A stretch of DNA of 63,812 nucleotides, the filler included, from Intoshia linei (Eukaryota > Animalia > Orthonectida), in assembly GCA_001642005.1 (NCBI GenBank). It is 3 parts of 3 records of this genome, joined end to end, with 100 filler letters (N's around TTAATTAATTAA, not from the genome) between each part and the next. Parts side by side here need not be neighbours in the genome. Positions count along the whole stretch, not along the records: positions 1 to 30,095 come from LWCA01000372.1; 2 more parts are not named here. One strand, written 5' to 3'. Within the stretch, counting starts at the first letter, position 1, and each line of letters opens with the position of its first letter. The notes beneath the pieces are model-generated. The model worked only from the letters and a program-made list of their open reading frames with translations. It was not told the origin of the DNA and ran no database searches. Positions 8,144 to 20,611 of the stretch are shown here, one piece after another. The position numbers were made by a program, and so were the translations under genes.

Positions 8144-9676
8144 TTAATTGGCATCTTTCATTGGTCTTAATGAATCAGCTATTCCAGGATTGGTGATATA
8201 GGCAGACATGAGGACAGGATACCTTTCTAACTGTTCCAATTCTTGACTGTTTGGGCATTGTAAAAAGAGTTTAGGCATTACGTATCTTTTCAAATCTTGG
8301 TATATTACAATATAGAAAGGTTTATCCATTGTAATTTTAATTTGGGTTAGGGTTTGATTGGTATATTGACTTATTGTATCTTTTTTTGTTCTTGATGTAT
8401 CTTGACTTAACTCTGAAAATTCTATCGAACGTGATGTTCTAGAATTTGAATCACCTTTCCTATTTCTCTTATTTTTATTCTTGTTTTTTCGTTTCTTCTT
8501 CTTTATACCTTTTCTATTTTTTTTGCCTTTTCTGCTTTTTTTACCTTTTTGTCCTTTCCGACGCTTTTTATCCTTACGATTTTTTTTCTTTTGATCTACT
8601 TTGGTCCTAACTTTTTTAGGAGTTGTTAAACTATCCGACATTGTGATTGCAGCCTCAACATTCCAAGACGTTCTTGTCATGCTCATTTCAACTTGATAAT
8701 CATAATTAGTGATATCCCTATAAGCGCCAGGTTTTTGTAGAAATCCAATGGGTCTGTTATTATGTAAAAATATACTACCCAAATCCATACTTTCAAATTT
8801 TTGTTTAAAATCGGCTTGAAATTGGAAATTATGTATTTCTGGTAATACGAGAGTTATATTGTCACTGTTGTTATGCTCATCGAATTGCGTCAAAATATTC
8901 CTTGTATCAAACACGAATTGACTTAGTTTGGGTTGAATAATCAATATTTTTCCCTCCTTTAAAACTTTACTAGTTAATTGCACTATTGCCACATTTTCAT
9001 CTACGTAGTAGGACATTTGATTCACAATATGGAGCATAGTAACCCCGTTATGTGTGTGAAATTTTGCATTTTCTTCAAAATATACTAGGTTATATTGGAA
9101 AGAGCGATACATATTCATGTTGCTTAGACTTAAAAAATTTGGTTCATTATATTTATAATTTTGACAGTGACTATAAGTTCTCATTTTACAAAATTGGGCA
9201 ATTTTATCTTCAGTGTCATATTGACTTAATTTACCCGTCATGGCTTTAAATATTTTTCTTTTCAGTTTGTGAATATAATTAAATATTTGAAGCCAGCTAA
9301 TTGTTTGATATTGGCCTCGGTCCATATCTGTATAGAAAAAGGAATTTAAATGAGTAAATATTTGTTCTGAGTTATATATGTTATCGTTCCGATTTGCGTA
9401 ATGGCTTAGATCACGTACCATTGCTACATATGGATAGAAGTTTCGATATCTAGTTAAATTTGACTCACCAAACATTGTTACGTACACCATTATTAATAAT
9501 GGATTTTGTAAGGCGGGAATAAATATTGCATTTTGTTGAGGATTGGCAAATACTTGTCTTTGCATTAAATCGTCATACAAGTCACCTTTTTTCAGTTGTT
9601 CCAAGATTTCTTGACATTTAGGCCAATCGCAGTTTACGCTAATCAAACAATATATGAGGAGTACTAATTTTCGCAT
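8144..9676 (-). CDS. Secreted divergent serpin-fold protein 1 (510 aa), with a polybasic expanded reactive-centre loop
   Basis: Intronless ORF with hydrophobic signal peptide MRKLVLLIYCLISVNC. Serpin landmarks occur in the correct order: DLYDDL..NP..NAIFIP (hA/s6B), LSNMNMY (s3A), FHTHNGVTML, VQL..ILIIQP, ITLVLPEI..ADFKQKFESMDLGSIF, ITMDKPFYIVI (s1C/s4B), VLMSAYITNP (s5B). ORF is certain; the fold call is by motif recognition. Confidence 0.8.
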   Translation of the reverse strand: MRKLVLLIYCLISVNCDWPKCQEILEQLKKGDLYDDLMQRQVFANPQQNAIFIPALQNPLLIMVYVTMFGESNLTRYRNFYPYVAMVRDLSHYANRNDNIYNSEQIFTHLNSFFYTDMDRGQYQTISWLQIFNYIHKLKRKIFKAMTGKLSQYDTEDKIAQFCKMRTYSHCQNYKYNEPNFLSLSNMNMYRSFQYNLVYFEENAKFHTHNGVTMLHIVNQMSYYVDENVAIVQLTSKVLKEGKILIIQPKLSQFVFDTRNILTQFDEHNNSDNITLVLPEIHNFQFQADFKQKFESMDLGSIFLHNNRPIGFLQKPGAYRDITNYDYQVEMSMTRTSWNVEAAITMSDSLTTPKKVRTKVDQKKKNRKDKKRRKGQKGKKSRKGKKNRKGIKKKKRKNKNKNKRNRKGDSNSRTSRSIEFSELSQDTSRTKKDTISQYTNQTLTQIKITMDKPFYIVIYQDLKRYVMPKLFLQCPNSQELEQLERYPVLMSAYITNPGIADSLRPMKDAN

Positions 9677-9925
9677 TGGGATTAATTTTCATGTATGAAA
9701 GTTGTTCGATTTATAATTGTATACAATTTAAATGCAAATAGAGTGGTGTTGATTTATAAATTTAGTAAAGTCGATTTTAGAACAAAAATTCAAAATATAG
9801 GCGTATCATTATAATTTTCTTACCCATGCTAAGTCTTAAGTTAAAAGTGGGTAAAGTTTTATATAATTGGGTATAATTAAATTTATTTTTATAATTAAAA
9901 GTTTTTACGTCTCAGAGTCTAAGAC

Positions 9926-19198: not shown

Positions 19199-20611
19199 TT
19201 ATTTATTAAAAGCTCTGTTAATTCTCGAAATAAAGTTTGGATTGTAAGGATCATCAATATACGCTGAAAAAAAAACATTATTTGACGTTAACCTCTTCAC
19301 TTCTGTTTCATTATACTGTTTGCAAGCAGAAAATAAGTCTTTTGGATTGAAACTAGTTCTATTTTCATACATTAATAAATAAAATGTTTGATTAAATGAA
19401 ACAGTTTTTAAATCGTTATTCGGGTTCTTTTGTTGTGTACTAAAATGAATAGTATTAACATCATGATCGCTTCCAGCATTTCCCGTGTTACTTGTTTGTA
19501 ATGGAGTTTTAGGTATTGGTATATTATCAGATAATGCAAACATTGTTTCCACAGTGAGAGTCTGACTACTCAACTCTATAAATATTTCCTGATCATAATC
19601 AGTCATCTCTCTATACTTTGCAGAAGTACCTTCAACACAATCATCCAAAAGTACAATATTACGGTGTTGATTGTGAAATGTATTATTTAAGCCCATCTGA
19701 TCAAATTTAGCCTTCATATCAATTTTGTAATCAATATTATTTACTTCAGGATAAAACAAGTTTATTTCCTCCAATGTAGATCTCTCTTCAAATTTTTGCC
19801 AAATGACTCTTGTGTCAAGAACAAACGAAGGGGATTTTGGCTTCAACAATAAAATTGTCATTTCTTCGTATGTTTTGGCGTGAATTTGAACAATTACCAT
19901 ATCATCATCCTCATAATTCCGCATATTACCAATCGCATGCACGTATCGAGCTCTTTTTGGTGAACCATCTTGACGAGTAAATGCCCCCTCATCAACAGAC
20001 ATTAATTTGAGATTCAACAGACCATACGTTCTAAATTTAGTAAACCAGAGAAATGTTGGGTTATTAACTTTAAAATTATTCATTAAATAGAAATGATTGT
20101 ATTCGAAATCATTTCTTATAAATTTTTTAATGTTTGTATTGTTTAAATCCATGTCTGGAAATCTCATAAAATCGTCATTGTAAATCAATAATTTTTGCAA
20201 CGATCTAGCAGCTGTTCTTAAACAATTTTGTGTCGAAAAATCAGTATAATAAAATAAGTGATTGTATAAATGCATTGGCACAAAATTTGAAGTGTAAATG
20301 GCATGCATACGTTGATGATGTACAACATCTACATAAAGTTTGATATTATTATGAAAATTTCGATATCCTCGCAATGTTGAAACAGCGTCCATCAATCCAT
20401 ATATGAGTACCAGCATATATTGTTGAATTGCTGGGAAAACGGCTGCATTTGAGTCTGGGTTTTTCGCTATATCCAATTTTATCAATTCATCGTATAAATC
20501 TGGCTTGTGTCGTTGATTATATAAATCTTTGCAAAATTTTTCTTCAACAATGTATGCTACCACTATAACTTTTAAAATTGCAAATGTTGTTGTTAGTGTG
20601 GAAAGTTTCAT
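19199..20611 (-). CDS. Secreted divergent serpin-fold protein 4 (470 aa), Ser/Thr/Gly loop
   Basis: Intronless close paralogue of 15282-16670, sharing PTFLWFTKFRT, GNMRNYEDDDM, FVLDTRVIWQ, YDQEIFIEL, NPKDLFSACK and AYIDDP. Confidence 0.75.
   Translation of the reverse strand: MKLSTLTTTFAILKVIVVAYIVEEKFCKDLYNQRHKPDLYDELIKLDIAKNPDSNAAVFPAIQQYMLVLIYGLMDAVSTLRGYRNFHNNIKLYVDVVHHQRMHAIYTSNFVPMHLYNHLFYYTDFSTQNCLRTAARSLQKLLIYNDDFMRFPDMDLNNTNIKKFIRNDFEYNHFYLMNNFKVNNPTFLWFTKFRTYGLLNLKLMSVDEGAFTRQDGSPKRARYVHAIGNMRNYEDDDMVIVQIHAKTYEEMTILLLKPKSPSFVLDTRVIWQKFEERSTLEEINLFYPEVNNIDYKIDMKAKFDQMGLNNTFHNQHRNIVLLDDCVEGTSAKYREMTDYDQEIFIELSSQTLTVETMFALSDNIPIPKTPLQTSNTGNAGSDHDVNTIHFSTQQKNPNNDLKTVSFNQTFYLLMYENRTSFNPKDLFSACKQYNETEVKRLTSNNVFFSAYIDDPYNPNFISRINRAFNK

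Follow-up and report, generated by a model that had tools for sequence, protein, structure and literature searches.

The window analyzed here, a 63,812-nucleotide stretch joined from three records of the Intoshia linei assembly GCA_001642005.1, carries a tandem array of four intact minus-strand open reading frames (ORFs), S1, S2, S3, and S4, that encode proteins of 510, 501, 462, and 470 residues. I. linei is an orthonectid parasite of ribbon worms. Profile–profile alignment and structure prediction show that the four genes belong to the serpin superfamily and that the predicted proteins keep the serpin scaffold. Most likely, they represent a tandem offshoot of the single-exon I. linei serpin family whose products are secreted and non-inhibitory and in which the proximal part of the reactive-center loop may be inserted into β-sheet A. 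An earlier sequence-only reading of this DNA had described four intact ORFs on one strand that fall into two pairs, and ORF calls together with full-length alignment confirm that description: the four align end to end, with 53% identity between S1 and S2 (pair 1), 63% between S3 and S4 (pair 2), and 26–27% between pairs. The frames are not expected by chance. At the base composition of the window, 27% GC, a random codon is a stop with probability 0.084, and the chance probability of a 462-codon open frame is ~2.5e-18. Similarity between S1 and S2 at the DNA level is limited to the coding region, and the duplications are therefore old. No additional decayed serpin copies were found in the window by tblastn.

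Serpin homology, fold, and ancestry

An hhalign comparison of the four-protein profile with a profile of nine Pfam-positive serpins of I. linei gives a probability of 98.4% and an E value of 6.6e-15 across 293 columns, which run from helix A to strand 5A. The same profile matches a canonical serpin locus of this genome (L018 on contig C2345) with an E value of 2e-7. Among 59 other serpins, 93 columns reach at least 70% conservation; at these, the four retain 24–31 identical and 43–52 similar residues, compared with 43% identical on average in canonical I. linei serpins, and the invariant Phe and Pro columns are kept. The degenerate motifs from which the sequence-only reading had recognized a serpin each lie in the column of their canonical counterpart (N..x.P of helix B/strand 6B, L.N..Y of strand 3A, F..V.M, L.P.F...L..G..F, D.PF, and the C-terminal ...P). 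The alignment columns also agree with its statement that the inhibitory hinge is absent.

Structure prediction leads to the same fold. The result from ESM Atlas is independent of the homology call: a feature search returned serpin clusters in 30 of 30 matches, with scores of 0.95 for S3 and 0.93 for S1, and the single-sequence models match serpin clusters with template modeling (TM) scores of 0.67/0.72 (S3) and 0.56/0.61 (S1). An AlphaFold2 model of S3, built on a 73-sequence, serpin-rich alignment, has a predicted local distance difference test score (pLDDT) of 80.1 and a predicted TM score of 0.83. A Foldseek search of this model against solved structures gave a best E value of 2.3e-18 and 415 matches at E ≤ 0.001, and all 45 of those listed are serpins. 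Superposition on solved serpins with VIA-align reached a best Z score of 32.7, with a root mean square deviation (rmsd) of 2.9 Å over 340 residues. Together, these matches agree with a three-sheet, 8–9-helix serpin fold over the whole domain.

Some results count against so firm an assignment. A direct Pfam hmmscan of all four proteins gave no serpin match at E ≤ 1, and PDB sequences searched with the family profile (hmmsearch) yielded nothing relevant; the assignment therefore depends on profile–profile and structural evidence. AlphaFold2 run with the four-paralogue alignment alone produced an unusable model (pLDDT 33.5), and the fold obtained with the larger alignment is not independent of the homology call because that alignment was chosen on the strength of it. 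The expectation that the fold would survive the divergence is borne out by structure prediction and Foldseek where a Pfam search alone comes back empty.

No orthologue of the four was found in a HMMER profile search of 1.84 billion representative proteins, and hence none of the well-conserved orthologues in free-living animals that would have spoken against the earlier reading. A word-seeded search of 5.8 billion proteins with S3 recovered only self matches, and the nearest canonical paralogue as query did likewise. Outside I. linei, the four-protein profile matched one protein among the representatives, a bacterial serpin that is truncated and comes from metagenomic sequence (E 5.5e-7). This 235-residue protein (L020:1823-2530, plus strand) is encoded on a 2.9-kb contig beside an apparently bacterial gene of unknown family. 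Its C-terminal motifs follow the pattern seen in the window four, which probably reflects convergence of conserved serpin motifs and not special kinship.

The assembly that we searched comprises 41,603,068 bases in 3,520 contigs, and the published size of the I. linei genome is 41.6 Mbp (PMC9218549). A microsporidian origin was considered and rejected: the small-subunit rRNA of the assembly fits the general eukaryotic model (1031 bits) and not the microsporidian one, and exact look-ups of sibling serpins lead to GenBank and UniRef entries of I. linei. Pfam and profile searches recovered 13 I. linei serpins that consist of a single open frame of at least 350 residues. In a maximum likelihood tree of 14 full-length I. 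linei serpin ORFs and 12 outside serpins, all 14 fall in one clade relative to the 12 outgroups (support 100/100), and the window four form a clade of their own (100/100) whose stem measures 2.06 substitutions per site. Because outgroups are few and several branches are long, the branching order within the I. linei group is not resolved. In N-terminal sequence, S1–S4 come closest to a leaderless canonical pair on contig C2345, with which they share a helix A motif. The long stem, the fully supported clade, and the lack of a detectable orthologue all fit the earlier description of a highly divergent, lineage-specific family. The canonical I. linei serpins (for example, OAF66249.1, named "Alpha-1-antiproteinase," OAF71093.1, and OAF71094.1) resemble the four in genome, single-exon structure, and clade membership, but they are 347–420 residues long and match PF00079 at 55–211 bits, and three keep the inhibitory hinge, whereas the four have neither a Pfam match nor that hinge. 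The account we favor is that a single-exon serpin family would have given rise to a tandem, lineage-specific offshoot that retained the scaffold and remodeled it.

Selection on the four appears to be purifying but relaxed, as indicated by dN/dS values of 0.44 for S1/S2 and 0.46 for S3/S4, obtained with the Nei–Gojobori method, which is crude in so biased a genome. With overall values below 1, nothing points to positive selection. No study of serpins in orthonectids or in Intoshia turned up in a literature search.

The wider family in I. linei includes at least 11 PF00079-positive serpin genes, nearly all of them single open frames in a genome that averages ~5 introns per gene. Serpin loci (L010–L019, L021, and L022) lie on contigs C1437, C2192, C2337, C2601, C199, C445, C2345, C2540, C2671, C1693, and C2164. 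Two copies are not intact: the one on C2164 is a pseudogene with 10 stops, and one on C2671 is in pieces.

The reactive-center loop and its predicted conformation

The inhibitory hinge consensus, ExGTEAAAA at P17–P9 (PMC8233489), is absent from all four proteins. In S1, S2, S3, and S4, respectively, P17 is Gly, Ser, Arg, and Arg; P15 is Thr, Thr, Ser, and Phe; and P14 is Leu, Leu, Trp, and Trp. Across the four, P12–P9 are Val, Glu/Thr, Thr/Ala/Gly, and Met/Ala/Ser, which are not all small. Elsewhere in I. linei, the consensus is kept in only three serpins (L010, L011, and L012). The loop is also far from canonical length. From nominal P1 to the Phe of strand 4B (s4B), S1 has 102 residues, S2 has 91, and S3 and S4 each have 44, compared with a median of 14 (range 10–19) in 59 other serpins, so the loop exceeds the median by 30 residues in pair 2 and by 77–88 in pair 1. 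Because hinge and loop length are both wrong for it, the inhibitory mechanism has likely been lost. The sequence-only reading had proposed a scaffold kept without inhibition; the fold and the missing hinge consensus stand, and the loss of inhibition itself we infer from them.

What fills the loop differs sharply between the pairs. The extra segment of pair 2 is rich in Ser, Thr, Asn, Gln, Gly, and Pro, whereas that of pair 1 contains a polybasic tract that is 69% Lys/Arg and overlies tandem repeats of different length in S1 and S2. This tract could bind polyanions such as glycosaminoglycans or nucleic acids, or serve in nuclear import or cell entry; neutral repeat expansion could also account for it. 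A search of the genome with the tract returned only the query itself, which is uninformative on how common such tracts are. A role for pair 1 as a proprotein-convertase decoy was considered and rejected: the loops contain dibasic sites only and no strict Arg-x-Lys/Arg-Arg site. A further insertion lies between s4B and s5B, where the spacing between the two Phe residues is 36–38 in the four compared with 13–14 in the 59 other serpins. One of two invariant Cys columns falls in this insert and the other in an N-terminal extension, and the two cysteines may form a disulfide. The canonical I. linei serpins have normal spacings of 9–17 (loop) and 12–21 residues, whereas the window four carry three added segments.

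The proximal loop, by contrast with reactive-center loops in general, which are normally hypervariable, is among the best conserved stretches between the pairs, with invariant Val, Ser, and Asp columns. In all four proteins, the even positions from P14 to P2 are Leu/Trp, Val, Thr/Ala/Gly, Phe/Ile, Leu/Met, Asp (P4), and Ile/Leu (P2), all hydrophobic or small apart from the Asp, and most odd positions are polar. It is the even positions that face the core in loop-inserted serpins. The S3 model shows what this pattern could mean: strand 5A (residues 336–348) is followed at once by a strand at 351–362 with a pLDDT of about 92, residues 365–396 are disordered (pLDDT <50), and strands matching s1C, s4B, and s5B are in place. 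The conformers that the model matches point the same way. The 14 best VIA-align rows (Z 30.2–32.7) are cleaved or otherwise loop-inserted wherever the title gives the form, whereas chains titled as native score no higher than 28.6, and the Foldseek ranking of conformers agrees. Among these best matches are cleaved CBG, vaspin, ovalbumin R339T, PAI-1, Serpin 42Da, and antithrombin.

A canonical intact serpin can insert its full loop only by pulling out strand 1C. Here, the 36–94 extra loop residues could span the ~70 Å back to s1C, and we therefore propose, tentatively and with somewhat less than even confidence, that these proteins are constitutively relaxed six-stranded serpins with a long surface tether. 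On this proposal, the hinge consensus would have given way to an alternating hydrophobic/polar segment conserved across the pairs, and the proximal loop would sit permanently in β-sheet A as strand 4A, the relaxed six-stranded form, which is hyperstable. With the extra length, the chain could rejoin strand 1C uncleaved, and a long disordered tether would be left on the surface; in pair 1, this tether would bind polyanions.

Two points bear against these proposals. The loop-inserted state comes from a single predicted model, that of S3. In addition, Lys/Arg/Asn-rich repeat tracts can arise neutrally in a genome of 27% GC.

Serpins without a hinge are not new. In Drosophila, 42% of serpins are of this kind and often lie in clusters, and hinge-less clusters are common in animals (PMC2770083). 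The hinge-less Drosophila serpins, ovalbumin, maspin, PEDF, and Hsp47 resemble the window four in having a serpin fold without the hinge consensus, often in clustered genes, and a function that does not involve protease trapping. To our knowledge, however, all of these keep an ordinary loop length and a five-stranded native A-sheet, whereas the distal loop of the window four is 30–88 residues above the median and the S3 model is six-stranded. The closest structural likenesses are cleaved CBG (2vdy), cleaved vaspin (5ei0), cleaved PAI-1 (3cvm), and latent antithrombin, which match the S3 model with Z scores of 30.2–32.7 and an rmsd of ~3 Å over ~340 residues and in which the proximal loop likewise forms strand 4A. 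Those conformers are reached after proteolysis or through a slow latency transition in which strand 1C is displaced; the S3 state is predicted for an intact chain with s1C in place.

Hinge-less serpin clusters in animals, and a serpin-domain label in UniProt for at least one of the four, were already known. New here are the extent and location of the loop expansion, the conserved amphipathic proximal loop with its predicted six-stranded state, the paired Cys-bearing additions, and the orthonectid setting. The boldest form of the proposal would make the four the first natural serpins to fold intact into the relaxed six-stranded state, loop-tethered and perhaps disulfide-clamped from the N-terminal extension to the s4B–s5B insert, and secreted as a hyperstable scaffold that presents a variable tether, polybasic in pair 1, to the host; as a whole, we consider it unlikely. 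Serpins are the textbook metastable fold, whose function needs delayed loop insertion. If true, a lineage that abandoned metastability by lengthening the loop, with its scaffold still under selection, would show that the fold has other uses, and the four proteins would offer a ready-made hyperstable display scaffold.

Probable secretion and possible roles

In all four proteins, an extension of ~30–35 residues precedes helix A; it opens on a basic residue, runs through a hydrophobic core, and carries an invariant Cys after that. The hydrophobic N termini noted in the sequence-only reading are thus present in four of four, and they are signal peptide–like by a heuristic that combines hydropathy with the −3/−1 residues: the Kyte–Doolittle mean is 2.25–3.0 over 11 residues, and small residues occupy plausible −3 and −1 positions. 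Such leaders are unevenly distributed among the canonical paralogues, of which four have a cleavable-looking leader, a fifth has a longer, anchor-like hydrophobic stretch at its N terminus, and five have none. The leader of pair 1 is conserved (dN/dS 0.22 over codons 1–24), each of the four proteins has 3–6 N-glycosylation sequons, and none has a KDEL/HDEL-type C terminus for retention in the endoplasmic reticulum. Given leaders in all four paralogues, the conservation of that of pair 1, the sequons, the invariant Cys pair, and the absence of a retention tail, the four are likely to be secreted. The N-terminal extension would, in our reading, have supplied a signal peptide–like leader and one of the two invariant cysteines. 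The database models of S2 and S3 argue the other way, in that both open on an internal Met and so lack the leader. Six sequencing runs from two studies are listed as containing the stretch, none of them recorded as RNA.

Three runs of a 2024 study, one of them under a different organism code, contain 21–45% of the sequence words of the S3–S4 stretch. They may come from samples of host together with parasite, or from a second isolate.

If the four proteins are secreted by a parasite, a role directed at the host is plausible. In its explicit form, this reading has the plasmodium secrete all four into nemertean tissue, where the scaffold would present a variable loop, which in pair 1 would be a tract resembling a nuclear localization signal or binding glycosaminoglycans or nucleic acids. 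It would refine and not exclude the relaxed, tethered serpin proposed above. Helminths and ticks use secreted serpins, and the S3 model matches, among other structures, that of a tick serpin (IRS-2, 3nda). The signal peptide–like N termini, the parasite genome, the lack of an orthologue in 1.84 billion representatives, the tandem duplication with fast evolution (stem 2.06, dN/dS about 0.45), and the difference in loop between the pairs all fit. The precedent is incomplete, however, as tick IRS-2 and the helminth serpins are working inhibitors whose hinges are canonical and whose Pfam matches are clear; the window four lack both such a hinge and such a match. Furthermore, dN/dS is below 1 overall with no sign of positive selection, and hinge-less serpins whose roles are endogenous or unknown occur in many animal genomes (PMC2770083). 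We regard host-directed effectors as possible but rather unlikely. The sequence-only reading had gone further, to an effector system whose loop position displays different cargo; the sharp difference in loop between the pairs is real, and the terms effector and cargo display overstate what can be inferred from it. Almost nothing is known of the molecules at the orthonectid–host interface, and the four genes with their at least 10 serpin siblings in a 41.6-Mb genome are concrete candidates.

The scaffold is retained, and it is conceivable that the four still act as inhibitors or suicide substrates, with a very long bait loop cut near an invariant Lys beyond the proximal loop to trigger insertion. 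An invariant Lys and Thr lie 3 and 7 residues past nominal P1 in all four proteins, and dibasic sites are plentiful in the pair 1 loops. Serpin inhibition, however, depends on loop length and fast insertion. The departures from the hinge consensus at P17, P15, and P14, the residues at P12–P9 that are not all small, and the absence of a strict convertase site speak against inhibition, and from general serpin enzymology, a bulky Trp or Leu at P14 together with a displaced cleavage site should leave substrates at best. We consider continued inhibition quite improbable.

The database models that start at internal Met codons imply intracellular proteins, and pair 1 could then have a nuclear or nucleic acid–related role through its polybasic tract, in which runs of 5–6 Lys/Arg residues resemble classical nuclear localization signals. 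The three I. linei serpins closest to S1–S4 in N-terminal sequence (L017, L018, and L019) are all leaderless. There is also a precedent in MENT, a nuclear, chromatin-condensing inhibitory serpin with a basic DNA-binding M-loop between helices C and D and no signal peptide, whose structure (2h4q) is among the Foldseek matches to the S3 model. MENT and pair 1 both carry a basic loop on a serpin scaffold, which in pair 1 would, by analogy, bind polyanions; the tract of pair 1, however, lies in the reactive-center loop of a hinge-less protein with a leader. An in-frame upstream leader is present in four of four paralogues and is under constraint in pair 1, the database models are mutually inconsistent, and the sequons and invariant Cys pair fit a secretory route. 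An intracellular location is thus very improbable.

Least probable of all is that the four are duplicates drifting to loss, with inserts that grew as neutral low-complexity sequence in tolerant loops of an AT-rich genome and gained no new function: the imperfect 18-nt tandem repeat of unequal length in S1 and S2, the relaxed constraint (dN/dS about 0.45), and the presence of at least one serpin pseudogene elsewhere (contig C2164, 10 stops) would suit it, but the four frames have stayed open through divergence to 26–27% identity despite 8.4% random stops, dN/dS is well below 1, and the two pairs have in common a conserved proximal loop, the places of the inserts, and both added cysteines.

Gene models, feature positions, and neighboring sequence

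The features discussed above are collected in Table 1. Databases treat the four genes unevenly: S1 and S4 are entered at full length, whereas the models of S2 and S3 start internally, an inconsistency among paralogues. The model that overlaps S2 (OAF68889.1, A3Q56_03382; UniRef A0A177B3N1) starts at residue 25 of our ORF and exchanges its last two codons for a predicted exon at 10721–10807, reached through a 369-nt GT...AG intron. The median intron of I. linei is 57 bp (PMC6543705). For this reason, and because the stop codons of S1 and S2 are homologous, we prefer the unspliced ORF, and S2 more likely ends at its own stop than by way of the predicted 3′ exon. The forecast that automated annotation would call such genes hypothetical is half right: NCBI names the S2 model "hypothetical protein," and UniRef names it "Serpin domain-containing protein."

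Table 1. Positions in the window of the four serpin-fold genes and of their loop, insert, and leader segments
Feature	Position	Strand	Basis
S1, divergent serpin-fold gene, pair 1, 510 aa	8144–9676	−	Intact ORF; serpin-only ESM Atlas matches; member of four-protein profile
S2, divergent serpin-fold gene, pair 1, 501 aa	11170–12675	−	Intact ORF; stop codon homologous to that of S1
S3, divergent serpin-fold gene, pair 2, 462 aa	15282–16670	−	Intact ORF; the protein modeled with AlphaFold2
S4, divergent serpin-fold gene, pair 2, 470 aa	19199–20611	−	Intact ORF; 63% identical to S3
Hinge and proximal loop (nominal P17–P1), S1	8624–8674	−	Alignment columns; inhibitory consensus absent
Hinge and proximal loop, equivalents	11617–11667 (S2), 15576–15626 (S3), 19517–19567 (S4)	−	Alignment columns
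Expanded distal loop, S1, 94 aa	8342–8623	−	Spacing from nominal P1 to s4B Phe
Expanded distal loop, equivalents	11368–11616 (S2, 83 aa), 15468–15575 (S3, 36 aa), 19409–19516 (S4, 36 aa)	−	Spacing from nominal P1 to s4B Phe
Polybasic tract, pair 1	8456–8590 (S1), 11416–11550 (S2)	−	31 of 45 residues Lys or Arg in S1
Imperfect 18-nt tandem repeats under polybasic tract	8479–8557 (S1), 11430–11508 (S2)	−	Repeat structure
s4B–s5B segment with 22–24-residue insert and invariant Cys, S1	8207–8317	−	Spacing from s4B Phe to s5B Phe
s4B–s5B segment, equivalents	11233–11343 (S2), 15330–15443 (S3), 19268–19384 (S4)	−	Spacing from s4B Phe to s5B Phe
Signal peptide–like N terminus, S1 (about residues 1–16)	9629–9676	−	Basic n-region and hydrophobic core
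Signal peptide–like N termini, equivalents	12625–12675 (S2), 16608–16670 (S3), 20555–20611 (S4)	−	Basic n-region and hydrophobic core

Two other minus-strand frames lie near the array. A 216-residue ORF at 2147–2797 has no Pfam match at E ≤ 1. The upstream neighbor of the array, at 23458–25863, is an open frame of 801 residues whose N terminus carries an FPL domain (PF09758, E 7e-29) of the kind found in CLEC16A-type proteins. It is listed from a TTG codon and may therefore begin elsewhere or in an upstream exon. The S1/S2 pair is flanked by two intergenic copies of a dispersed ~165-nt repeat, at 6586–6750 and 13719–13884, that are ~80% identical and may represent a small mobile element.

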